From: Caecitellus pseudoparvulus
Lineage: Eukaryota; Protista; Bigyra: Bicosoecida
DNA length: 64,000 nucleotides
Assembly: GCA_965644315.1 (NCBI GenBank)
Contig: CBFFRQ010000096.1
Coordinates: 186,001-250,000, forward strand
Reading direction: 5' to 3'
The notes under the pieces are model-generated. The model did no database searches. It was not told the DNA's origin and saw nothing but the letters and a program-made list of their open reading frames with translations. The first letter of the stretch is position 1. Each line of letters opens with the position of its first letter. Shown piece by piece: positions 46,371-64,000 of this stretch. A program made the translations under genes and the position numbers.

Positions 46371-49300
46371 ATGTCCGACTTTCGCAACATCAAGCTGCTC
46401 CTGTGGAGGCAGTGCCTCTCCAAGCGCCGTGCGCCGTTGAGCGTTTGTTGTGAGGTCAGTTTCACCCCGCCACCACCACGTCACCCAACCGCTGCACCGA
46501 CCGCCTACATGCCCCGGCACAGATCTTCCTGCCCATCATCTTCACTGGAGCTCTAGTGGGCATCTTTTCCATCATCACCGTGAGTCCAGGGCCCGCTGTG
46601 GCGGCCTGCACCCCAGCCCCCTGGCACTTTCCCGGCGGCATCCGAGGCTGTGATTGTCCGCTGCCGTCTGCGTCGCCATCCCGGAGCCCCACTGATTGAA
46701 GGAGCTCTGTCATGTTTCCATGTTGTATTTTCATCCTATGCCTGCCGTACCACGCCTTGGCACGACCTGTGGGTCTCTCCAGCACCTCATGATGGTCCAG
46801 CCTGCACCACCGGGCGTTTCTCCCCGCGGATGGCTCTCCGAGCTTGGCTGGCTTCGCACTCCCGGTCACTGTCACACCCATGTCACTCGCTCCCGCAGGT
46901 GACCGACGAGCCAACCCAGACTGGTGTCCTGGGGAAGAACGCTGTAAGTTTGCCCCCCTAGCCCTGTTCTGGCCACTGCAGACGTTTCCCAGTCTTTTCC
47001 GCTCGGGCCTCCCGCTCCCTTCCGCTACTCATGCACGTCCGCTCCCGTCCCTCAACAGGTCCGCGACACTGTCCTTCCCCTCCAACTGGTTCCCTGGCGA
47101 TTCGACGCTGAGAACACCCGCATTGCCTTAGTCGATGGCGGCGTTGGCAGCGCTTTCCTGGACAACTTCTCGGATTGGGTGGATGGTAGGTTGTGAGGCC
47201 CAACACGCCCCCCTCAGGACAGATCCGGCTCACACGCGCCTCCACACGGCTCACCCGGCCAACCTCTCCCTGTGCAGAGCAATACCCCGGCATCAACTCT
47301 TCCCTGCTGACTCAGGCCTCCCAGCTGGCATGGACCCCGCCCAACGGGCCAACGTACCCTGACACGCTGCCCCCCCTCGGTGAAATCCCTCCGATGTCCC
47401 GCATTTTCAAGCGCTTCGGCAGCCTGGATGAGCTGCACAAGTACGTGGAGGACCCTGCCTACTCAACTGACAACGACATTTCCCTTATCTACGGTGCCAT
47501 CGTGTGGAACTCCGCCGGCCCTGCCTTCGACTACGAGCTGCACTTCAACCGAAGCTCCACCCCCGACACACGCTTCCCCGTCTTTTCCTTCGTGCCTGGC
47601 CTGCTATCGTGGCAGAGGGAGCTGACGCAAGGTGTGTCACTGTACGATGGCGTCGCTGACATTGGGCAGGAAGGCCTGCTTGGCGCCGGCGCACCTGGTG
47701 CGCTCTCCTGGCAGCAGCTGGTGGCGCGGTACACCGTGCGGCAGAACGTGACCACCGCGGCTCGTTTCGGCGCGCCCAGCCCCACACAAGGCAACGATGT
47801 CATCGGCAAGGTGTGGGATGCCGCCATCGGCTCCGTCACTGCGAACCTTTTCAACACAGAGGCCACCGGCCTGCAGCGCCTGTCCTCGTACTCCACCATG
47901 CGCCAAGCTATGTCGTCCGTGAACGAAACGCAGGGACTGGGTGGCGCGCTGGACGCCCAGCTCATCAACCTGTTCAAGGCGGAGGCGCTGCAGCCCACTG
48001 ACGTGGAGCTTGCCGTGTTCCCCGTGGAGGCTTACACGAACAACCCCTTCTACGCCAACGCGGGGCCCACCTTCGGCCTCTTCTTCATTATCTTCTTCGC
48101 CCTGCACGTGCTCTTCTTGACGCGCGGTGTTGTGGCCGAGAAGGAGACCAAGCTGCGTGAGGGCATGCGCATGATGGGCCTGCACAAGAGCGCCCTCTTC
48201 ACCTCCTGGGCCCTCTCCTACATCATCCTGGAGGCGGTGGTGTCCCTGGCCATGACCGCCATTGGCGCCTTGGCAGTCTGGCCCAACTCTAACTTCGGCG
48301 CCATCTTCGCCCTCTTCTTCTTCCTTGGCTGCTCCGTCATCTCCTTTTCCTTCCTCGTCTCCGTCTTCTTCTCCAAGTCTCGCCTGGCCTCCGTCCTGGC
48401 CGGCGTGCTCTTCTTCGCGGGATACTTCCCCTACACCGGCTTGAACGCCGACGCCTCCACTGGCACCAAGGCAGCCGCCGCCCTCCTGTCCCCCTCCGCC
48501 TTCATGCTGGGCTTCAGCAGCAACCTCATGACCCTGGAGAACGCTGAGGTGGGCGTCGTGGACACCACCATCGACACCCTCATCGAGAACTGGTCGTTCT
48601 CCCTGTCCCTGCTCATGCTGGCTGTCGACACGGCCCTGTACGCCATCCTGGCTTGGTACTTGGACGAAGTGTGGCCCACGGAGTTCGGCGTCCCACGCCC
48701 CTTCTACTTTCCCTTCACCGCCGAGTACTGGCGCGAGGCCTGTGCCTGCTGCTCCTCTCACACCCGCGTCGCCGACAGCGAGTCACGTGAGGACCACGGG
48801 GACAAGGACGACCACGCCATCACTGGCAGCGACCTTGTGGAGCCTGCTGACAGCGAGCTGCGCGGCAAGGCTGCCGACGGCAAGGTCGTGAAGATTCGGG
48901 GGCTGAAGAAGGTCTTCTCCACGCCCGACGGAGACAAGGTGGCCGTCGCAGGCCTGGACATGACCATGTACGAGGGGCAGATCTTCGTCTTGCTGGGGCA
49001 CAACGGCGCCGGCAAGACCACCACGCTGTCCATGCTAAGCGGCCTGCTGCCCCCCACAGAGGGAGACGCCAACATCTACGGCAAGAGCGTGCGTGGAGAG
49101 CTGGACGCAGTGCGCGCAAACATGGGCGTATGCCCTCAGCACGACGTCCTGTGGGACGACCTCACCGTGAAGGAGCACCTGTACATTTTCGCGGGCATCA
49201 AGCGCATCCCGGAGGACAAGGTGGAGCAAGCCATCACCGACGTCATCGCGGAGGTGGGCCTGACAGAGAAAGTGGACTCCTACTCCTCCACATTGTCCGG

Positions 49301-52300
49301 AGGACAGAAGCGCAAGCTGTCTGTCGCCATCGCCCTCATCGGCGACTCCAAGATCGTGTTCCTGGACGAGCCCACCTCAGGCATGGACCCGTACTCCCGC
49401 CGCTCCACGTGGCAGATCCTGAAGAACTCCCGCGCTGGCCGCATCATGGTGCTCACGACGCACTTCATGGACGAGGCTGACATCCTGGGCGACCGCATCG
49501 CAATCATGGCCGACGGCAAGCTGCGCTGCCTGGGCAGCCCCATGTTCCTGAAGAAGCAGTTCGGTGTGGGGTACAACCTCACCCTCATCAAGCAAGACGA
49601 CAAGGCCTCCTCCTCCAACGTCAAGACCCTCGTCAAGAAGCACGTTTCCGAGGCAGAGATGTACTCCTCGGCCGGCCGCGAGATCTCCATGCGCCTGCCC
49701 CTGAAGCAGTCCGCTGCCTTCCCCGAGCTCTTCGACGCCCTGGACTCCAAGCTGGACGAGCTGCGCCTGGAGACGTACGGCATCAGCGTCACCACGATGG
49801 AGGAAGTCTTCCTCGCCGTCGCGTCGGGAGACCACGGCAAGGCTGAGGAACAGGGCGGCGCCGCAGCTGCCACGGCACCAGCCGGCGGTGCGGCCGCCAC
49901 GGAGGCCACCCCCCTCACCCAGGCCGCCTCCACCCGTGCTGCCACCGGCCTCAAGCTGTCCGACGTCCGCAAGAAGTCCCGCTCCATCCAGCAGGGCGCC
50001 TTCTGCCGCCACTTCTCTGCGCTCTTCCGCAAGCGTGTCGCGTACTTCCTGCGTGACTGGAAGTCCATCGGGCTGCAGATGGTCATCCCCATCCTCGCAG
50101 TGCTGGTGGGCCTGTCCATCGCCAACACGGGGGCAACCTTCAACCTGCCTGACCTCGAGATGACACTGTCTGCCCAGTACAACCGCGGATCAGATGGCTC
50201 GGCACTCACGCAGCCCATCCCGTACTTTGCCCAGAAGGCCACTGGCGGAGCCTACGAAGACCTGTACGTGAACCCTGCAGCTGACACATCCATCACGGGG
50301 GTGTTCTCTTCCTCAGTGGCGCCCTCTGCTGGCGAGTTCCGCCAGAGCAGCGCTGTGGTCAACGATCAGTACGACTTCTTCTCTTCCTACGTGAACTCCA
50401 TGGGCTGCTTCGACGGCGTCAACACCACTGAAACCTGTCGCCAGAGCCTGCCGGAGGTGAGCTCCCTGGACCCCATCATGCTGAACATGTCCACTACCCT
50501 CCTGGACATTAAGGACAACTTCGAAGCGTCCATGTACGGTGCGTACGTGCTGGGCGAGCCTCACTGGGCTGCCTCCACCGGCGCCGCTAACCCTCCTCTG
50601 GCCTGGGGCGTCATGAGCAACTCCTCTGGCACTTACGCCTCTGCGACGTACTTCAACTACCTGACAGAGTTCTTCATGCGGGACGCCGACGATGCATCGC
50701 GCCTGTCCTACACCTTCGGCGTGCTGCGATTCACCAACCGCGAGCGAGAGAACCTCGAGCGCGTCACCGGCCTCGTCGCTGCCATCATCACCGTCATCGG
50801 CTTCACGTTCGTCCCAGCGTCCTTCGTCTCCTTCGTCGTCAGCGAGCGGGAGGTGGGAGCCAAGCACCAGCAGCTCATCTCTGGCGTGTCCATCCCTGCT
50901 TACTGGCTCAGCACATGGCTGTGGGACTACCTGACCTACCTCGTGCCGGCAGTGGGCACCATTTTGGTGGCTGTTGGCTATGACATCAAGAACTTCATCG
51001 GGGATGAAGACGACCGCCTGCCCGCCTTCTTGCTTACGTTCGTCGTGTACGGCGTCATGGCCTCCAGCTATGCCTACATGCTGAACTTCCTGTTCAAGTC
51101 CAGCTCCCGCGCCCTGACCATTCTGATCATGCTGGGCTTTGTGGACTTCATCCTCGTCCTCACCGAGTTCCTGCTGGGCCTCTTTACCGACACTTGCGAA
51201 GCTGCCCGCGCCTTGCGCTATGTCTTCATGCTGTCCCCCGGCTTCGGCCTGGGCAACGCCCTGCTGAAGCTCAGCAACCTGTCAGGGCTGAAGGTGTTCG
51301 AGGCGCTATGTGATGGTGGCGACGTCGCTGCTGCCACGCAGGACCCCTACACCGCGCTGGACATGCCAGCAGTCGGCGAGAACCTGACCATGATGGCCTG
51401 CCTGGGCGTCTTGTACTTCATCATCGCCGTCGGCATCGACACGGCACAGTCCTACCCTTCCATCACAGTCGCCGTTGTCTCCGCCCTGCGTCCCTTCCAG
51501 AGCTGCCTGGGTGCGTGCATCGCCCCCGAAGTGCCTCTCACGGACAAGGACGTCTCAGACGACCAGGACGTCATCGCTGAGAACCGGCGCTGTGAGAAGC
51601 AGGTGGAGCAGCCCACCGATGACAACGACGTCATCCTCCTCTCTCACATGCGCAAGGTGTACCCTGGCGGCAAGGTGGCTGTGCGTGACATGTCCTTCGG
51701 CCTCCCCGTCGGCCAAGTCTTCGGCTTCCTGGGCATCAACGGCGCCGGCAAGACCAGCACGCTGAAGATGCTCAGCGGCGACGTCATCCCCACGGGTGGC
51801 AAGGGCACCATCGCCGGCTACGACATCGTCTCCGAGCAGCCAGACGTGCGCCGCCTGCTCGGGTACTGCCCCCAGTTCGACGCCCTGCTGGCACTCATGA
51901 CCACTCGCGAGCACTTGGAGCTGTTTGCACGCATCAAGGGTGTGCAGGAGGCAGACGTGGACGCTGTTGTGCGCGAGAAGATGCAGCAGATGGGCATCGA
52001 GCAGTACGAGCACAAGAAGGCGGGCACGCTGTCCGGAGGCAACAAGCGCAAGCTCTCTGTCGCCATCGCCCTCATCGGGAACCCCCCCGTGGTGCTGCTG
52101 GACGAGCCGAGCACTGGCATGGACCCCGTCGCCCGCCGCCAGATGTGGAAGATCATCGAGGAGGTCGCTACCCGCCGCAAGGAGAGCAGCATCATCCTCA
52201 CCACGCACTCCATGGAGGAGTGCGAGGCGCTTTGCCAGAAGGTTGGCATCATGGTGGGCGGCAAGTTGCGCTGCATGGGCTCCATCCAGCACATCAAGGA

Positions 52301-52952
52301 CACCCATGGCGCTGGCTACGTCTTGCAGGCTGGCATGCGCAGCGTGACTGCTGAGGAGGTGCAGGCCACGCAGGAGCGCATGCAGGGCACCCTGACCAAC
52401 CTGGGCGTGCAGCAGTCCATCCTGCCTGACCACGTCCTGGCCCTGTGCAAGGCCCTCGGCAATGGGGACATGGCGCGGGAGTTCTCCCCCACTGGCTCTG
52501 CGTGGGCGCTGCATGCCGCCATGTCTCGCCCTGGCTCCAACGTCACCCCCGCTGAGTTCGCGCAGTGGTGGACGGAGGAGACGTACGTCAACAACTTCAC
52601 TCGCTACATGACCACCGAGGCGTTCCCTGGCTCCGCCCGAGTGGAGCGCCACGGGTCCAAGCTGCGCTTCCAGCTGCCGCCCCAGACGGAGCCCCTCGGC
52701 CGCCTCTTCCGCCGCGTCGAGAGCCGCAAGGACGAGATGGGCGTATCGGAATATTCCCTGAGCCAGACAACCCTGGAGCAGGTCTTCAACCAATTCGCCT
52801 CTCAGCAAGAGGAGGAGAAGGGTGTGGCCCGTGGCATGGAGGCCGGCGCTGCTGCGGCCGGCGCAGGCAACGCGGCCGCTCCTGGTGCTGCTGCTCCCGT
52901 CGTCGCGCCCAACCCCATGATGACCCCCAGCAAGCCCAAGACGGAGGTGTAA
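46371..52952 (+). CDS. Full-size ABCA family lipid transporter (5 exons)
   Basis: N-terminal LLLWRQ…KRR, EKETKLREGMRMMGL, two NBDs (GHNGAGKT/LSGGQKRKLS/LDEPTSG and GINGAGKT/LSGGNKRKLS/LDEPSTG) and TLEQVF. Introns at 46455-46522, 46580-46898, 46944-47058 and 47186-47277. Confidence 0.95.
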
Positions 52953-53239
52953 GCCCTCCCCCGAGCCACCACTTTGGTGGGCTCCTTTCATGTTTCCTGG
53001 TTTGCCGCACTGCAATGCATCGGCACTTGGTGAGCGCGCTCAACCTGCGCCACTCCACGCATGGGAAAGGAGGCCCGAGCTCATGCCTGCAGTACTCGCT
53101 CAAACGCGATATGGAATCACTTCACCCCCCTCCCAGACCCTCATCGATTCACGATTTGCACTGTGCTCTGCGCTACAGCCATCGGCCAGTGAAGTGCCCC
53201 ACCGCAACACGCCTTCAGCCCACTCTGCCCCTGAGCACC

Positions 53240-54926
53240 ATGGCTGCTGCTGCCATGCCCGTCGTGGGCCTGTACGGCCTGGCCGTCATGGGCCAGAACT
53301 TGGCCTTGAACATCGCCGAGAAAGGCTTCCCCATCGCAGTGTGCAACAGGTCACCGGAGAAGGTGAGGGTGTGCCCATCAGCTGGTCCAATTCCGCAGGG
53401 AATCCTCCGAGGGTTTTGCACTCCCCTTCACTGCTCCTGCGCATCCCCAGGTGGCTGTCACTGTGGAGCGTGCAAAGGCAGAAGGAGATCTGCCCCTCAC
53501 CGGCTACACAGACGTGAGCAGAGCCTGCTCGGACATGCGTGCCTTGTCTCGTGCAGTGTCACTCCTGGCGCTGGCCACGCCGCACAGGTGCAAAGCTTCG
53601 TTGGCGCCATTGCCAAGCCCCGCAAGGTCATCATGCTGGTCAAGGCTGGTGCCCCGGTGGATGCCACCATTGACCTGCTGAAGGAGTACCTGGAGGTGAG
53701 AGGGCGCCCAAGTTGCGTTTCCCGACTTGCCCGGACACGCCTCCGCCCTTCATGCCTTTGCGTAGCCCGGAGACGTGCTCATTGACGGCGGCAACGAGTG
53801 GTTCCCCAACAGCATCCGACGCGCCAAGGAGCTGAACCCCAAGGGCATTCTGTACATGGGCGTGGGCGTGTCAGGGGGCGAGGAGGGCGCTCGCAACGGG
53901 CCGTCCCTCATGCCTGGCGGGCCTCGTGAGGCATACGATCTGGTGGAGCCCATCCTGACCAAGGTGGCAGCTGTCACGGACTCTGGTCCCTGCGTGACGT
54001 ACCTCGGGGAGATCGGCTCCGGCAACTACGTCAAGATGGTGCACAACGGCATCGAGTACGGCGACATGCAGCTGATCGCAGAGGCGTACGACATCCTGAA
54101 GACGGTGGGCGGCCTGACCAACCCGGAGCTGGCTGCCGTCTTCGACGAGTGGAACAGCCAGGAGCTGGAGTCCTTCCTCATCGAAATCACCGGCGCCATC
54201 TTCAAAAAGAAGGACGACCAGGGCGGGGACGGCTTCCTCGTGGACAAGGTCCTGGACAAAACTGGCATGAAGGGCACTGGGCGGTGGACCGTGCAGGAGG
54301 GCGCCGAGCGCAGTGTCCCCGCACCCACCATTGAGGCGGCCCTGGACGCCCGCTTCCTGTCTGGGCGCAAGGAGGAGCGCCTGGAGGCGGAGAAGGTGCT
54401 GAGCGGGCCTTCGGCCCTGCCCACTGTGGACAAGCAGCAGCTCATCGAGGACGTGCGCGCTGCACTGTATGCCAGCAAGATCTGCTCCTACGCCCAGGGC
54501 ATGAACATCATCAAGGCGGCGTCCCAGCAGCTGGGCTGGTCCGTGGACCTCGGCGAGTGCGCCCGCATCTGGAAGGGCGGCTGCATCATCAGGGCCGCCT
54601 TCCTGGACCGCATCAAGGCTGCGTATGACCGCAACCCTGACGCCGCCAACCTGCTGGTGGACCCCGACTTTGCCGCAGACCTGAACACCCGGCAGCAGTC
54701 CTGGCGCCGCGTCGTCGCGCTGTGCATTGGGTCTGGCGTCCCTGCGCCCGCTCTCAGCGGTTCCCTCGCATACTTCGACGCGTACCGCCGGGGGCGCCTG
54801 CCTGCCAACCTGACGCAGGCCCAGCGTGACTTTTTCGGAGCGCACACCTTTGAGAGGACGGACATGGAGGGCACCTTCCATGCACAGTGGTCGGATGCCA
54901 CTGGCTCAGCAGCTGCCGCGGAGTAG
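53240..54926 (+). CDS. PGD: 6-phosphogluconate dehydrogenase, decarboxylating (4 exons)
   Basis: GLAVMGQNLALNIAEKGF, IDGGNEW, GVSGGEEGAR, VKMVHNGIEYGDMQLI, KGTG, GCIIR, QAQRDFFGAH. Introns at 53362-53450, 53514-53587 and 53696-53765. Confidence 0.97.
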
Positions 54927-55103
54927 GCTTCTGGGCAATGCAACGTTGTGCTTGGCTTGCTGCCTCGTGAGCTGACGGTCACAGTTGCTGGGCCCCACTA
55001 AAACTCCACAAACCACAGAGTCCTCCTCGCACAGCTGCACGACGCAGTGCTTGCATCGCTCACTGTGGTGCCCTGATCACGCACGCACGCCTCGCCTGCA
55101 GCC

Positions 55104-56765
55104 ATGTCCGGCGGGGAACCCAGCAAGCCGACCGAGAGTCTGCCCGACGCGGCAGCGCCAGCAGCTTCTGAGCCCGCACCCGCTGCAGCTGGGGAAGGGC
55201 TGGGAGGCGACGACATCTGGGGTGACGGGGAGGAAGATGACCTGCCCGCTGAGATTCTGGAGCTGTCAGATGAACAGATCAGGCAGCGTGTGCGCATGCT
55301 GGATGTAAGGCGACGCTGCGGAAATCGCCCCAACGCCAGCGGCGCAGGTCAGCACGCCTTGCTCCTGCACAGGGCAACATTCGCATCATGAAGCAGGAGC
55401 GGGCGCGCCTGATCTCCGACATGAAGAAGCAAGACGCCATCATCAAGGACAACAAGGAGAAGGTCAAGCTGAACAGGACGCTGCCGTACCTGGTGGCCAA
55501 CGTGGTGGAGGTGAGGGTGCTGGCGTCTCGCAACGCTGGCGTGCGCCACGGTCTCCCGCCCCTTTGCAGCTGCTGGACCATGAAGAGGAGGATGATGGCG
55601 AGGACAAGACAGTGACAGACGGAAGTGCACAGGGTGGGAGCAAGACTGCAGTCGTGAAGACCACGACGAGGCAGGTGCGTGCTGTGCCCTTGCCTTGTCA
55701 GTATCGGCGTGGTGTGGGGGGAAACGCAAGCGTGAAACGCCGGCAGCTGCGTCGCAAAGGGCAGGCTTCCCATGCAGTCCAGGCATTGTCCACGATCGCC
55801 CCCCTCCCCTACAGACTGTTCATTTGCCGGTCATTGGGCTGGTGCCGTCCGAAGAGCTCTCCCCGGGTGACTTGGTGGGCGTCAACAAGGACAGCTACCT
55901 GGTGCTGGAGAAGCTGCCAGCTGAGTATGACAACAGGGTGAAAGCCATGGAGCTGGACGAGAAGCCGTCAGAGACGTATGCTGATGTGGGAGGGTGCGAG
56001 AAGCAGATCCAGGAGCTGCGCGAAGCAGTCGTCATGCCCATGATGGAGGCTGACAAGTTCACCAAGATCGGCATTCAGGCCCCCAAGGGCGTCCTCCTGC
56101 ACGGCCCACCTGGCACAGGCAAGACGCTCCTGGCCAGGGCCTGTGCAAACCAGACCGATGCAGTGTTCCTGAAGCTGGCAGGGCCGCAGTTGGTGCAGAT
56201 GTACATCGGTGACGGCGCCAAGATGATCCGCGATGCCTTCGACTTGGCGAAGGAGAAGATGAAGGAGCTGGAGAAGCGTGGGGCCATCATCTTCATCGAC
56301 GAGATCGACGCCATCGGCACGAAGCGTGTCGACAGCGACAAGGCTGGCGACCGCGAGGTGCAGCGCACCATGCTGGAGCTGCTGAACCAGTTGGACGGCT
56401 TCGGCAGCAACGAGGTCATCAAAGTCATCGCCGCGACGAACCGCCCTGATATCTTGGACCCCGCGCTCTTGCGCTCTGGCCGCCTGGACCGCAAGATCGA
56501 GCTGCCGCTGCCCACAGAGGAGTCCCGCATGCATGTCCTGCGCATTCACTCGCGCAAGATGAACGTGGACATGGAAGATGTGAACTTGCGGGAGATCGCT
56601 CGGTCTTGCGAGGACTTCAACGGTGCCATGTTGAAGGCTGTCTGTGTGGAGGCGGGCATGATCGCCCTGCGCAGGGACGCCACGCTCATCAAGCATGAGG
56701 ACTATGTGGAGGGCATTTCGGAGGTGCAGATGAAGAAGAAGCAGGCTCTGAACTACTATGCTTGA
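55104..56765 (+). CDS. RPT5: 26S proteasome AAA-ATPase subunit 6A (4 exons)
   Basis: [68 protein letters not shown] and C-terminal HbYX motif YYA. Introns at 55304-55371, 55511-55569 and 55675-55813. Confidence 0.97.
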
Positions 56766-57053: not shown

Positions 57054-60000
57054 ATGGCTCTGGTGCGCATGATGCGCAAGCGCCAGCTGGAGCCTGAGAG
57101 TGGGCACCCCGCATGTGTGAACCGCCGTATTCCCAAAGCTGACACGTCAATCGCCCCTCTTGCTGCGTTCTCCAGCGCTCCCCCGTCAGCAGCACTGTTT
57201 GCCGGAGCGATTGTGGGCCGAGGGCTGCTTGCGGCCGATGGCAGGCTTGCGGTGCCACGGGCGCCTTCCGGTAGCCTGCACCGCATCGAGCTCAGCGTTC
57301 AGCGCGAGCCAACGAATGAGTATGACCCCAACGCGCTGCTTTGGTGCTGTGATGCAGGCCCCATGGGGTATGCCACTCGCACCTTGGCAGCGGCGGTGAC
57401 TCCCTTGCTCAGCGCGAGCAAAGTGCGAGTGGTGGGGCTGCTTCGGACACAGCACGCAAGACTGGCAGCTGCTGACACAAAGTGCAACATTGCAATGGAC
57501 GTTGTGGTGCACGTCGTCTGCCCATCCATCCTGCAACGCCTGCATGCGGCAGTGGAGCCGTCCCCAGGCAGGCCGCCTCTGGATGTGTGCGTCGCCAGAC
57601 TACGGGAAGCGTGGCTGCACGACGGCGCCCCTTTCATGCCTGCCCGTGCTCCGATGGGCGCGACAGGCGTTGGCGCGCTGCCTCCCTCAGCGAAGCGGAG
57701 GCGCAGCATGGCCAGCGTCGTGGGTGGCGTACAGCAGCAAACCCCCAGCCCCACCATCCCAGGAGGCAACCAAATGCGCCTGACAGGGAGCCTGTCGGGG
57801 CGCCGAGGACCAGCAGTGCAAGCAAGCTCGTGTGATGTGGCACGCCACTTCCCCAAGCGCGTCCTCGTGCTGCTCTTCTCCTCTCCAGGCTTGTCAGTGC
57901 GAGATGTCGTGCTGGGCGCCAGGGGTGTGTGCCGGGCGTGGCGTGATGCAGCAGACAGCCCTGACTGTGCGCCAGCACGCCGCGCCTTTGCCTTGCTTCA
58001 CCACACGTTTTCAGGGGCCACTCCTTCACCGACAGCCGCTCCGGGAACCGCGCTGGCTGCCGCCGTGCCGGTGGCCACCGCAAAAGATGCCCGCCCACCT
58101 TCCCTGCCTGCGTGGGCGTCGGAGCCCCTGCCTACCAGCTTCGAGACTCTCATGCGGTGGGTGGCGGCTGCACAGCCGCTGTCGTGCGACATGGCTTGGC
58201 TCGTGGCGCAATGGGCGACAGGGCAGTTCCCTGTGCAGTCTTCCGGGCCTGCGGCAAGCCAGGCCGTGCTGCTTCGGCGCATCATGGAAGCGGCCTTGGA
58301 GCAACTGCCCCCACTCAGACGAGCGGTGGGCGGCTGGGCGGCCATCTGTGCCATGCTCCTCTTCACGACTGAAGACGTCGCCCGGCGCTTGCTGTGGGTG
58401 CTCTTCACTTGCCCCGCGAAAGTGTCGCATTCTGCAGCCGCGGCAGGGTTGCGGGACTTTCCCTGGCGCCAAGATGTCATTAACGTTGTGTACTTGCTGC
58501 TTCTTGCTTTGAGCTCGCCTGAGTGGCTCAGGGTAGGGCCGACTCCGGGGGGCGTGACCGGCGGCTCATTCGGTGAGCTTGGCCGCACGAAAGCACTCTT
58601 AACGTTGGAGGCGCGGGAAGACTTAGTGGCACGGTCCAGAGTCATGTGCCATGCCCTGAACGTTGGCTCCACAGTGGCAGTGGCAGGTTCGGTGGGCCCG
58701 TATCCTTCCTTTGACAGCCCAGGGTGTGTTGTTGCCGGTGTCCCGCCAGACATGTGCTCTACCATGGCTCGGGGAATGAGCAGGAAGCTGCATGCCCCCC
58801 CCCATGACCTGTGCCAGATACCGAACAGCTCTACTCATATTCGCCAGCGTGCCAGTCCAGTTGTCAGAGCCGTGAGACACCAGCATCCTGCCGCTGAGGA
58901 TGAGGAAGACGGGACGCTTCAGCGCGCCGCAACGTCGACAACCCCACGCAGTCTGCTTGACGTGCTCCGCGTTCCGGACTCCTACCATGACTTGCTGGCT
59001 CGGGCAGACGGCCGTACCCAGTTCTTGCTAGCATGCATGCGTTCAGCTGAGAATCCGCTTGGCGGTCTGGCCTCATCACCGAGCTCCCGCGGAGCCTGGG
59101 CCTTGAAGGTGTCCCCTGCTGCCACTGGGGAAACAAAGTCCCACCGCCTCACCGAGGAGCAACTTAGCATTGTGCAAACAGACGTCGGCCCAGGCCAGCT
59201 CCTACGAGTGTTGGCGTTTGCTGGCAGCGGAAAGACCACAACCCTCATCGAGTATGCGACAGCGCGCCAACACAAGCGCATGCTGTACTTGGTGTTCAAC
59301 GTGAGCGTAAGGGAGGATGCCGAAGGTCGCTTCCCCCCGAATGTGACTGTGAAGAGCATCCATCAGTTGGCGTTTGCTGAAGTCGGCAGGCGGTACTCCG
59401 GCCGCCGTCAGCTGGTCAGCGAATTGTCAACGAAAATGATCACTAGAGCGCTGGGGCTGGGCAGCGGTAGCGGCATGTTTGAGCTTGCAACGTGGGTCAA
59501 AGACACCGTCCTCCAGTTCTGTCACAGCGTGGACCGAGCGATGCACTTGCACCACCTTCCGGCAGCGGTCGCTGGCCGGCTCCCCACAGGCTTCACCCTG
59601 CAGCAGGCGCTCCGGATGGTCCCCAAGCGCCAGCCCGGTGATGCGCCCAGCCGGCAGTCATTTGATGCACGCCATGTTCTTGGCTTCGCGCAACGTCTGT
59701 GGGACGCAATGGTGGACCTGGCAGACCAAAGTGTCAGCATGACCCACGCAGGATACCTGAAGTTGTTCCACCTCTCAAAGCCTGATCTCGGCAAGCATTT
59801 TGCCGCGATTCTCCTGGACGAAGCACAAGACTGTGCGCCAGTGGTGGCAGACACGGTGCTCTCCCAGTCATGCGGAGTTGTCCTCGTGGGCGATCCACAC
59901 CAGTCTGTGTACTCCTTCGCCGGCGCGGTGGACACGCTGTCCGCCAGCTTCAGCGCAAGTGCGAGTGGCCGAGCTGGATGGGACCCTTTGCACGGGCGCA

Positions 60001-61722
60001 CAGTGACCGTGCGAAGGCTGACAAGGTCGTTCCGCTTTGGTCCGAACATTGCCCGTGCTGCGGCCAGCATTCTGCGTTGCCGTAAGCTGGAGCCGGAGCC
60101 TCTAATCGGTTTGCCGCTGGCACTCAGAGAGGATCGTGTGCGCCTGGAGACGCCGGCACCCATGCACTCTGCTCAAGGCATGCTCCCACCGCGCATGGTT
60201 GGTACTATGCTTGCATCACAGCGCATCGTCTCAGCGATCGACTCACCCTTGCACCCGTGGCTCCTGCATGCTCGTCGAGCAGGGTTCCTCCGCCGTCTCC
60301 TCAACGCCAGCGACGTGCAGCGGGTGCTTGCTGCGACAAAGGAAGGCAAGGAGGCACCTGAACTATCGGGGCCCTCTGCGTCCACGCCATGGACGGTGGC
60401 ATTGCTTGCTCGCGGGAATGTGACGCTCATGTTCCTCGCTTGGCAGCTGACTACCCTGTGTGTCGACAGCAGCAAGCCAAGGCACCTGCCTCCTCACCCC
60501 TCTTTGCTGCAGAAGAAGTATGAAAGGGCCCATCGCGATGGCTTGAAGTCAGTTGCCATTGCCAAGCCTGTGCACACTGGGCGCTGTCCTCGAATCGGAG
60601 TGCTGGGGATGAACGATCGCAACCCCGCCGACCACGCCTTTGGCATGCGACAGCTTGAGGACGTGTGCTGCCTGGCCCTCAAGGTGAAGTCGTTGATCGA
60701 CTCGCCACTGATCCGCGCGTTCAACTCGTAGGTGCCCACATGTTCCCGCCTTTGCCTACTGCTCGCCTTCGCACGTCGCCCCCCCACTCCTGCGCAGGCT
60801 TGTCGCTCTTCAGGCCTTTGCAGAGGCCACTGGTCGTGTTGCGATGAAGAGTCAAGTTGCCCTTGTCTCCGAAATGGGGCCTGCTGTCGTGCTAAGCGTC
60901 ATTTACCGCGTGCGCTGGGCACTTGTTGGGCCTGGGGAGGGGCCCGACATCGTGCTGGGAACTGTGCACAAGGCGAAGGGGCTGGAGTTCGATGAAGTCA
61001 TTCTGGCTGACGACTTTGGCGATTGCGCGGTCACAGTGGCCCACGCACAGTTTCTGGGACTGACTCTTTCCTTCTCGAACTGGAGGGAAGAGCAGAACTT
61101 GCTGTACGTGGCATCCACACGAGCCAAGCACCAGCTGTGGGCCAACAATGTCCTCACGGAACTGCTGCTTGCGTGCCCCAGCACTTCGTCTCCCTGTCTC
61201 GTGGCCACTGACCCCAGCTGCAAAGCCTCTGAGCCAAGTGCGAGCGGGGTTGCTCGCAACGCGATGCGGGATTGCACCAGGCCCGCCATGCTCTCGACGG
61301 GCTTCCATGCAGTGCCACCATCTCATGCGCACGTGCACTTGCTTGCCCCCCCGCTGAAAGGTTCCGAGTCTCCCTCACCGTCCATACATGTCATTCCTGT
61401 TCAAGGCCCGCTTCCGCTGCTCTGTGAGCTGCACAACCTTCGGGCTGGCGCGGGGGCATGTGCATCCTTGGTGAGTGCCATGCTGCGCCAGGATGGCCTC
61501 CACCTCGCGGGGAAGCCCGGACCTGAAGAGTCCTTGGAGGGCATCGACTCCATGGAGTTCATCCCAAGGGACCGCCCAGCCCGCGTGAGTTCGGGAAGTG
61601 CAAGTGAGTTGGAGGGTGAGCGCCCAGCCTCCAGTGCAGACAGCCAGGTCACTGAAGCGGAAGGCAGTGAAGCATCGGTCATCATCATTGACGACAGCGA
61701 AGAGAGTGACTCCAGCGTCTGA
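57054..61722 (+). CDS. FBH1: FBH1-like F-box DNA helicase (UvrD/SF1A) with N-terminal HIRAN domain (2 exons)
   Basis: HIRAN-like REPTNEYDPNA…GY, F-box-like FPKRVLVLLFS…VCRAWRD, and helicase motifs LTEEQ, AFAGSGKT, YLVFN, LDEAQD, VGDPHQSVYSF, LTRSFRFG, TVHKAKGLEFD, EEQNLLYVASTRAK. Intron 60728-60797 joins the two ORFs in frame. Confidence 0.85.
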
Positions 61723-61889: not shown

Positions 61890-63098
61890 ATGCAGGCAGT
61901 GCGGCGCGCTCTCGGCCGGGAGGTCAAGGCTGGCTTGGCTTCATTTTCCGCAGCAGCAGCCCCTGCTCGCTCAAGCAGCACAGCAGCCGGAATCCCCTTT
62001 GTAGACGTGCACACGCACGTGTACTTGCCACGATACTTGGAGATGCTCCGGTCTCGGGGCACAGTGCCCAAGGTTCAGACGGTGGGCGGGGAGGACCGCC
62101 TCATCATCTTGCCTGGTGAAGATTCTGTTTCCACCACGGCAGCTGGCAGGCCAGTTGGCGGGGAGTACCACGACCCTGCCCGCAAGCTTGCTTTCATGGA
62201 CACTCACGGCATCGATATTTCGGTGCTTAGCTTGGCAAACCCCTGGCTGGACTTTTTGCATGCTGGGGAGGCCGTTCCGCTGGCCAGCCACCTGAACGAC
62301 GACCTGGACGCTGCTTGTGCGGCTTCAGGGGGCCGCTTCTACGGATTCGGAGTGCTGCCCATGCAAGATGTAGACGCTGCGTGTGCGGAGGTGGAGCGCA
62401 TCGCTGCGTCTCAGCACCTGCGTGGGGTCATCCTCAGCACGCACGGGCGTGGCCAGTGGCTGGACGACCCTGCGCTGCTGCCGGTGTACAAGACGCTGGC
62501 CACGCACAACATGCCGGCTTTCATCCACCCCCACTTTGGCGTGGGGAATGCCGAGTTTGGGGAGGAGTACGGCCACACGCTCTTCCTTGCCCTAGGCTTC
62601 ACGTTTGAGACCACCACCGCCATCTGCAGGCTCGTGTGCTCTGGCCTGCTCGATGAAGTGCCAGACTTGAAGCTGCTGCTGGCCCACGCAGGGGGCACGT
62701 TGCCGTTCCTTGCTGGTCGCCTGGACAGCTGTGTGGCGCACGACCTGACCATTGCTGATCGCCTCAAGCATGAGCCCTCTCACTACCTCAGGCAGTTCTA
62801 CTACGACTCTCTCGTTTACCACCCTCCGGCACTGGAGGCCACAACTGCCTTCGTGGGGGCAGAGAACCTCATGTTCGGCACAGATCACCCTTTCTTTCCC
62901 GCTCCTGGCGTGTCCAGGGAGCCCATTGGCCCAGACACGACGGTCACCAAGCTGGACACCGCCAAGTGGATGAGCACGACGAAGAACCAAGATATTCTGA
63001 CGGGGTACATGTCCGAGGCTCGGGGCTCCGCAGTGGCTGCCGGCGTCGCAGGCGGCAACGCAGCACGCATCCTGAACCTCACCATGCCTTCTGCGTAG
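61890..63098 (+). CDS. Uracil-5-carboxylate (isoorotate) decarboxylase, amidohydrolase-2/ACMSD family
   Basis: VDVHTHVY, GRP, FMD..GI..SVLSLANPW, FIHPH, YGHTL.LALGF..ETT, LLLAHAGGTLPFLAGR and MFGTDHPFFP match fungal IDCase motifs as recalled. Confidence 0.85.
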   Translation: MQAVRRALGREVKAGLASFSAAAAPARSSSTAAGIPFVDVHTHVYLPRYLEMLRSRGTVPKVQTVGGEDRLIILPGEDSVSTTAAGRPVGGEYHDPARKLAFMDTHGIDISVLSLANPWLDFLHAGEAVPLASHLNDDLDAACAASGGRFYGFGVLPMQDVDAACAEVERIAASQHLRGVILSTHGRGQWLDDPALLPVYKTLATHNMPAFIHPHFGVGNAEFGEEYGHTLFLALGFTFETTTAICRLVCSGLLDEVPDLKLLLAHAGGTLPFLAGRLDSCVAHDLTIADRLKHEPSHYLRQFYYDSLVYHPPALEATTAFVGAENLMFGTDHPFFPAPGVSREPIGPDTTVTKLDTAKWMSTTKNQDILTGYMSEARGSAVAAGVAGGNAARILNLTMPSA

Positions 63099-63247
63099 GC
63101 ACGGGGCGAAGTAATGTGCCATAGCATCACGTGGCGGTGTGCTGGCCTCGCAGAGCAGGAAGCACCACAGCAGTCAGGGCGGGTGGCAGAAAAGTGCATT
63201 TCAGTGGAACAGCAATGCAGTAAACAAACGACAAGACGCGGTCCCCC

Positions 63248-64000
63248 TTACCCGATGACAGTCACCTCCTCATCCTCATCGTCCTCGCTGCCGCCCTCCA
63301 GCGCCTCCTTGAGAGCTGAGAGCAGGCCCTCCACGTCGTCATCGTCACTTTCGTCGGCAATGCGGTCGCCGTACGCCGCCATAAAGCGGGTGAACCCTTC
63401 ATCGACGTCGTCAGCATTCTCGCGCTCCCGCTCGATTTCAATAGCCACGTCGATGGTGATGCCGACAAACACCTGGCTGAACAGCACCGCCACCAAGGCA
63501 ACGTATGCCATGAAGTAAAATGCCGGGTTAATGCTGTTGGAAGCATCTACCAACGCGTACATGATGTCATTCCAGCTCTCAGCCAGCATGAGAACGTAGA
63601 GCGTGCTCATGGCAGACTCGAACGTGTCGAAGTTGGCGTTGCGCATGATCCCCACGACAGAGGGAGGCAAGTCTGACATGAGCCCGGCAAAGGCCCAAAT
63701 GCCAAGCACAGCGAAGGCATACATGACAAGCAACAGCAGGGCAAGGATGGAGAGGAACTTGTGAGCTTGTGCGATCAGCCCAAAGACCAATGCACGTGTC
63801 GCATGTACGACAGAGAACAAGCGCAGGACTGGCAGGACCATGGACAGGCGGGCCAAGTCGTTCACTTGCAGTGTCTGCAAGGAGTCCGCGTCCACAGAGT
63901 CGAGGCGAGCTTGGAATCCACCTGTGCTGGAGGTGGTCACGAAGAGACTTGCCAGAGCCACGATGATGGTCAGTACGATGATGAAGAAGTCGTAACGGTT
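63248..64000 (-). CDS. Voltage-gated cation channel superfamily protein (TPC/Cav-like), C-terminal part; runs off window
   Basis: S4-like LARLSMVLPVLRLF, S5 YAFAVLGIWAFAG, pore NFDTFESAMSTLYVLMLAESWNDIM, S6 FYFMAY…VFVGITID and an acidic tail. Confidence 0.8.
   Translation of the reverse strand, partial: NRYDFFIIVLTIIVALASLFVTTSSTGGFQARLDSVDADSLQTLQVNDLARLSMVLPVLRLFSVVHATRALVFGLIAQAHKFLSILALLLLVMYAFAVLGIWAFAGLMSDLPPSVVGIMRNANFDTFESAMSTLYVLMLAESWNDIMYALVDASNSINPAFYFMAYVALVAVLFSQVFVGITIDVAIEIERERENADDVDEGFTRFMAAYGDRIADESDDDDVEGLLSALKEALEGGSEDDEDEEVTVIG

Follow-up and report, generated by a model that had tools for sequence, protein, structure and literature searches.

The stretch of DNA analysed here, referred to as the window, comprises 64,000 nucleotides of contig CBFFRQ010000096.1 from the bicosoecid Caecitellus pseudoparvulus. 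A forward-strand gene at 57054-61722 encodes a HIRAN domain, an F-box and an FBH1-type helicase in a single protein. This gene is the only FBH1-like copy found in the genome and is a member of a HIRAN-bearing FBH1 subfamily that is apparently undescribed. FBH1 and HLTF are regarded as separate routes to fork reversal, the former relying on a helicase that unwinds the nascent strands and the latter on a SNF2 motor steered by a HIRAN domain that reads 3' ends; the subfamily unites the HLTF reader with the FBH1 motor. On balance, we lean towards a role in which HIRAN recognises the nascent leading strand by its 3'-OH and eases fork reversal by FBH1. The underlying activities, namely fork remodelling and the binding of 3' ends and of Skp1, are those that we infer from motifs and folds.

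The HIRAN-like segment, placed by the earlier note at ~57190-57440, was recovered both by profile and by structure. The Pfam profile PF08797 (cut-off 24.7 bits) gave 26.8 bits on exon 1, 30.4 bits on residues 1-200 and 36-45 bits in the orthologs described below. An AlphaFold2 model of residues 33-209, with a predicted local distance difference test score (pLDDT) of 81.9, displays the six-stranded barrel of the fold and superimposes on the HLTF HIRAN domain (4xzf) with a Z-score of 12.2 and a root-mean-square deviation of 2.7 A over 118 residues, unrelated folds giving Z-scores of 3.4 at most. A HIRAN match was also returned by Foldseek (E 5.6e-6). The domain is longer than first supposed and extends over about 57165-57623.

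The 3'-OH pocket of this domain can be compared directly with that of HLTF, in which D94 binds the primer 3'-OH and Y72 and Y93 pinch the last two bases (PMC5773155). Residues N88, Y90, D91 and N93 align with HLTF N91, Y93, D94 and N96 (HLTF numbering from PMC4666394) and are unchanged in the four members of the clade formed by the window protein and its orthologs; R109, the equivalent of HLTF K113, is likewise invariant in all four. In a set of 33 HIRANs fused to helicases of this kind, D91 never varies and N88 hardly ever does. The genome also encodes a separate Rad5 (HIRAN-SNF2-RING; L011:2949-7358, G000:C19) and a FAN1 (L022:1451-5998, G000:C18). Since the HIRAN of Rad5 is devoid of the NxYD loop and no HIRAN was detected in FAN1, FBH1 may be the only carrier of an HLTF-type 3'-end pocket in this genome; a profile of the NxYD-type HIRAN matched nothing else in it, introns being able to hide other copies.

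That these domains belong to one gene, as the earlier note had proposed, was settled by comparison with related species. The fusion of HIRAN to FBH1 is real, because two syntenic orthologs, P0002 (1686 residues) and P0003 (1698 residues), hold all parts in one complete intronless open reading frame (ORF). Both are about 40% identical to the window protein over the full length and, in a tblastn search, their residues fall on the two exons of the window, with the break located at the predicted junction. The same gene order, with a proteasome AAA ATPase, FBH1 and then an amidohydrolase where the contig reaches that far, is found in three related species. A third ortholog (L006, GCA_024449685.1) also holds all parts, with a frame break between the F-box and the helical domain that is most likely an assembly error; this break (L006:7740-7830) adjoins a run of eight C, and HIRAN was thereby missed in the called protein P0004. 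Identity among the orthologs reaches 79-89% in the F-box, 82-90% in the helicase core and 62-66% in HIRAN, and drops to 26-40% in the linkers and about 41% in the tail. In HIRAN, the proportion of non-synonymous differences (pN) is 0.21-0.24 with saturated synonymous sites, which corresponds to purifying selection.

In the window itself, the gene is predicted to consist of two exons separated by one intron of 70 nucleotides. The first open frame starts at the ATG in 57054 and ends at an in-frame TAG (60729-60731), and a second one (60799-61722) carries helicase motifs V and VI; both PF13361 and PF13538 exceed the Pfam cut-off on exon 2. Excision of 60728-60797, an intron also present in the strain contig L007, drops the TAG, restores the frame and renders the predicted protein of about 1530 residues, with its long insertions, colinear with the intronless orthologs. 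A nearby donor at 60732 was rejected because it leaves the TAG in exon 1; of the two donors, only that of the intron 60728-60797 both bypasses the stop and brings the frame back. Searches with the spliced model used the two exons separately, and the intronless orthologs served for whole-protein work. One could still suspect an artefact, that is, separate HIRAN and helicase genes, a chance profile match or a pseudogene broken at 60729, on the grounds that the splice was deduced from sequence alone and that the frame of L006 is broken between F-box and helicase. This explanation is largely refuted and very improbable: a single open frame covers HIRAN through motif IVa, the intron ends are canonical and in the correct phase, the L006 break lies beside its run of C, P0002 and P0003 are complete, and transcript-derived homologs (EukProt, MMETSP) bear both domains.

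The remainder of the protein is an FBH1, human FBH1 being its best match by sequence and by fold. All of the SF1A helicase motifs announced by the earlier note, from Q to VI, were found intact in a motif scan. The best PDB sequence match of the helicase is human FBH1 (9xzj, E 1.2e-48), and Foldseek on an ortholog model gave E 5.9e-32 for FBH1 versus 1e-13 for UvrD. The model of P0002 residues 250-1420 aligned with the SCF-FBH1 chain 9xzj_F with a Z-score of 29.3 over 687 residues, beginning at the start of the F-box (residue 136), and with the helicase-only chain 9xzm_F over 481 residues. This surplus of aligned residues points to an FBH1-like fold of the F-box and of the helical N-terminal domain as well, in a model whose input alignment contained animal FBH1s and may favour such a fold; in the helical domain, pLDDT is mostly 60-90 in the folded parts and <50 in the insertions. 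The basic pair R779/R780 corresponds to R447/K448 of human FBH1, which bind the fork junction and are needed for fork reversal (PMC12946210); it is invariant in the four clade members and not universal across the wider HIRAN-FBH1 subfamily.

Two other identities were considered. A Rad5/HLTF identity was ruled out, since no SNF2 or RING match was found and the true Rad5 gene lies on G000:C19. As for Srs2 or UvrD proper, PF00580 matched only a short stretch with 38.8 bits, versus 186 bits over the whole model in the gene of G000:C68. The basic AKRRR motif reported by the earlier note is present and becomes AKRAR or KRAR in the orthologs; it would serve as a nuclear localisation signal. Neither an AlkB homologue 2 PCNA-interacting motif (APIM) nor a canonical PCNA-interacting peptide (PIP) box of the QxxLxxFF pattern was found in the protein by motif scan. 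The C-terminus ends in a feature additional to those of the earlier note, a motif at 61678-61710 resembling a SUMO-interacting motif (SIM). All four clade members carry this SIM-like motif at the C-terminus, although identity in the tail does not exceed about 41%, and fewer than 2 per 10,000 tail shuffles yield the pattern, which was defined after the motif had been seen.

According to a 2026 preprint, the barrier to fork reversal by FBH1 is the opening of the nascent leading-strand end. In the mechanism proposed here, the enzyme would act within a Skp1-cullin-F-box (SCF) complex through its F-box, and its SF1A motor would load onto the single-stranded DNA of the lagging-strand template at a stalled fork. 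The motor would move 3'-5' while R779 and R780 keep hold of the branch point, as their counterparts do in the human enzyme, and HIRAN, placed ahead of the F-box by a linker of ~75 residues, would grip the nascent leading-strand 3'-OH through N88, Y90 and D91 and fray the end. HIRAN would favour forks that offer a free 3'-OH and make them reverse faster, because opening of the leading end is the main barrier in human FBH1. Stripping or ubiquitylation of Rad51 is probably a further task of the enzyme, and SUMOylated fork proteins probably attract it through the SIM-like motif, which would stand in for the missing APIM. Skp1, cullins, PCNA, SUMO and RecA-family recombinases are all encoded in the genome. 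As HIRAN would bind exactly the end in question, this natural fusion offers a direct test of the leading-end barrier model.

Several observations weigh against this role at forks. The first one concerns the pocket. In the four clade members, a Leu occupies the apparent position of HLTF Y72, where most other HIRANs on such helicases have Phe or Tyr, a mapping that we take from our own alignment. Because the four loop residues and R109 are kept and the Y72 equivalent is apparently Leu, the pocket appears mostly, and not fully, HLTF-like. It might then be argued that the HIRAN of this clade no longer reads 3' ends and has become a protein-binding or general DNA-binding module on an ordinary FBH1. 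Besides the apparent loss of this aromatic residue, H110 is apparently lost too (a Tyr or Phe stands in its place, which is also the case in most relatives), HIRAN is less conserved than the F-box or the helicase core, and HIRAN folds can persist without the NxYD loop, since that of the genome's Rad5 lacks it entirely. The invariance in four species of the residues lining the 3'-OH pocket (N88, Y90, D91, N93 and R109), despite saturated synonymous sites, argues the other way, and we hold such a change of function to be unlikely.

The SCF side raises further difficulties. PF12937 gives the window F-box 14.9-18.8 bits, under the cut-off of 24.3; the F-box-like motif of the earlier note is thus sub-threshold in the window, and its case is made by strong conservation among the orthologs, which score 22.9, 23.2 and 24.5 bits, one of them exceeding the cut-off. 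The zinc ribbon, which in human FBH1 bridges SKP1/CUL1 and the helicase, is undetected: its CxxC pairs were not found in the sequence of exon 2 nor at the ends of P0002-P0004. It is kept in Hondaea fermentalgiana and in most other HIRAN-FBH1s, and is also undetected in several animal-type matches. Moreover, in the human structure the fork junction is bound on the side that points away from the SCF body, so that HIRAN would have to reach round. Finally, D-loops or resected ends could equally be the substrates of an anti-recombinase equipped with a reader of 3' ends.

This last point opens the way to an explanation in which HIRAN binds 3' ends for recombination control, loading the helicase on 3' single-stranded tails or on the invading end of a D-loop for Rad51 stripping or D-loop unwinding. 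Many related FBH1s start with Fx[ST]A motifs, which resemble Rad51-binding FxxA motifs; in the window's clade, however, an FxxA is not conserved at the N-terminus. The antagonism of FBH1 towards Rad51 is established, as is the loading of SF1A motors on 3' tails (PMC12946210), and the C-terminal SIM recalls Srs2 (PMC6356670). Conversely, the genome encodes a separate Srs2-like helicase, and the clade never departs from the fork-junction pair; in human FBH1, loss of this pair impairs reversal much more strongly than unwinding. Recombination control as the purpose of HIRAN therefore seems rather improbable to us, and this role and the favoured one in fork reversal can coexist.

The architecture is not confined to this clade. 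Word-based searches with the N-terminal 330 residues or with the subfamily alignment matched only the clade and Hondaea, and the uniqueness that they suggested was overturned by a full HMMER search. With a profile running from HIRAN to helicase, this search produced 7388 matches, and the distribution figures given here are those of the best 150 of 7388; because of this sample and of a profile that favours HIRAN-bearing matches, a frequency of HIRAN-FBH1 cannot be given. At least 14 other eukaryote-type clusters have, ahead of an FBH1 helicase, a HIRAN that passes the Pfam cut-off, and two further ones pass a local HIRAN profile. The named bearers are Hondaea fermentalgiana (GBG31563.1) and the dinoflagellate Polykrikos kofoidii, and others come from EukProt and MMETSP; since these sets are transcript-derived, HIRAN and helicase share one transcript in those species. 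A local iterated profile detected the F-box in 11/16 eukaryotic clusters and failed to do so in five clusters of the Polykrikos group (P0112/P0258, P0113, P0116, P0117, P0124), which may, in the light of this negative result, no longer act in an SCF complex. This group retains the zinc ribbon along with HIRAN and the helicase, and P0112/P0258 also terminate in a SIM-like motif. The Fx[ST]A motifs mentioned above stand, in up to three copies, at the extreme N-terminus of P0113, P0116, P0117, P0124, P0258, P0005, P0008, P0014 and P0122.

In 13 further clusters, HIRAN is fused directly to a related helicase without an F-box (P0120, P0127, P0130, P0131, P0139, P0140, P0150, P0153, P0158, P0164, P0175, P0176 and P0186; loci on contigs, L024:2462-5512 and L025:8001-12485). 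These proteins often end in FGE-sulfatase, Lcl_C, TPR or zinc-ribbon domains. The single long contig examined for them is bacterial and resembles a mobile element, as suggested by the IS66, RadC, DUF932, second UvrD, PD-(D/E)XK nuclease and SSB neighbours of the L025 helicase. No description of this bacterial family was found; its helicase might serve in defence or be related to conjugation. When GTDB genomes were scanned with the bacterial alignment, 80 related helicases came out, none of them with a nearby HIRAN, which leaves the bacterial fusion without a named host.

A tree was built on 274 helicase-only columns, with P0156 and the long-branched P0192 omitted. The 16 eukaryotic HIRAN-FBH1 rows, including the window protein, form one group (bootstrap 80, the bootstrap not having settled; Shimodaira-Hasegawa-like approximate likelihood ratio test 92), separate from an animal-like FBH1 group (98/87) and from a second, HIRAN-less F-box group (100/97). 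The bacterial fusions are placed with bacterial helicases that lack HIRAN (93/91). The eukaryotic set was intermixed, in quick trees, with P0192 or with the HIRAN-less group. In view of the helicase-only tree, one old eukaryotic HIRAN-FBH1 subfamily is the simplest reading. The usual make-up of FBH1 is thus not the same beyond animals and fungi as within them. The subfamily also prompts one to ask whether the pairing came from bacteria. The approximately unbiased test did not reject a tree that unites the eukaryotic with the bacterial HIRAN fusions in a single clade (p 0.162), and so does not tell one origin from two. It is conceivable, although doubtful, that the ancestral FBH1 was a HIRAN-helicase that eukaryotes took from a bacterial mobile element, that the F-box and helical domain were inserted between its two parts, and that animals and fungi later lost HIRAN. 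If this were true, human FBH1 would be a cut-down enzyme, and its slow leading-strand step would reflect the loss of HIRAN.

The source genome is GC-rich and intron-poor, measures 30.6 Mb in 215 contigs, has an 18S gene of about 1697 nucleotides and turned up in marine metagenomes. The neighbours of the FBH1 gene (47193-56765 and 61890-63961) resemble ordinary housekeeping genes, with an ABCA-type transporter, a 6-phosphogluconate dehydrogenase, the proteasome AAA ATPase, the amidohydrolase and a minus-strand ion-channel-like ORF. The N-termini of P0002, P0003 and the L006 protein begin with a conserved MxLRAFLKR, degenerate in the window protein (57054-57083), which resembles a truncated PIP motif.

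Features of the HIRAN-FBH1 gene, in coordinates of the window
Feature	Position	Strand	Basis or remark
Exon 1	57054..60727	+	1224 codons + 2 nt; HIRAN, F-box, helical N-terminal domain, most of helicase
HIRAN domain	57165..57623	+	residues 38-190 by structure; Pfam core residues 80-152
NxYDxN loop (N88, Y90, D91, N93)	57315..57332	+	pairwise alignment to HLTF
AKRRR basic motif, candidate nuclear localisation signal	57690..57704	+	sequence and orthologs
F-box	57846..57989	+	residues 265-312; sub-threshold, conserved among orthologs
FBH1-type helical N-terminal domain	58101..59120	+	long low-confidence insertions; boundaries approximate
SF1A helicase, first part	59148..60727	+	best PDB sequence match 9xzj
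Helicase motifs of exon 1	Q 59148; Walker A 59214; Walker B (DEAQD) 59817; III 59889; IV 60024; IVa 60408	+	
R779-R780	59388..59393	+	aligned to 9xzj
Intron	60728..60797	+	70 nt, GT-AG, phase 2, predicted from sequence
Exon 2	60798..61722	+	remainder of helicase, with motif V at 60961-60993 and motif VI at 61099-61128; C-terminal region
SIM-like motif	61678..61710	+	four hydrophobic residues, then acidic run

HIRAN-FBH1 is a real variant of FBH1, broader than the earlier note supposed and apparently undescribed. No paper on a HIRAN-FBH1/UvrD fusion was found, the Hondaea protein included, and the 2006 HIRAN survey (Iyer et al.) might list the architecture. The window protein is not a one-off, belonging as it does to a wider, apparently old subfamily spread over stramenopiles, dinoflagellates and other eukaryotes and already represented in databases by GBG31563.1. 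This Hondaea protein (UniProt A0A2R5GSE2) is a known parallel in design, with the same architecture, a HIRAN of 39.9 bits, an F-box-like segment, an FBH1 helicase and a place in the same tree group. It differs by its zinc ribbon and by the absence of the SIM pattern, and its database label is merely F-box DNA helicase 1.

Compared with human FBH1 (FBXO18) and fission-yeast Fbh1 (structure 9XZJ, PMC12946210), the window protein has the same order and fold of F-box, helical domain and SF1A helicase, and it shares with the human enzyme the junction-binding basic pair and the DE of Walker B. A folded HIRAN replaces the disordered N-terminus with PIP box of human FBH1, the APIM is absent, the zinc-ribbon CxxC pairs are undetected and long insertions are present. 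It also carries the C-terminal SIM-like motif, whereas PMC6356670 states that a SIM is lacking in the human enzyme. The latter motif and the UvrD-family core are reminiscent of Srs2/PARI, but the protein is far nearer FBH1 in sequence and fold and has an F-box, and the Srs2-like gene is a separate one (G000:C68). This Srs2-like helicase (L023:1864-5556) ends in a PIP-like QxxLxxFL with no obvious SIM; the two targeting signals of Srs2 may thus be split between two helicases, the PIP being on the Srs2-like protein and the SIM on FBH1.

The gain of HIRAN by a known repair enzyme has parallels in plant FAN1 (PMC4402529) and plant TDP1beta (PMC5704218), which carry a HIRAN absent from their animal orthologs; there, the partner is a nuclease or a phosphodiesterase and not a helicase, and the FAN1 of this genome is itself without a detectable HIRAN. 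The likeness to HLTF/Rad5 lies in the union of HIRAN, an ATP motor and a ubiquitin-ligase module in one chain, together with the equivalents of N91, Y93 and D94. In HLTF/Rad5, however, HIRAN is joined to a SNF2 translocase on double-stranded DNA and to a RING, whereas in the window protein it is joined to an SF1A translocase on single-stranded DNA and to an F-box adaptor.

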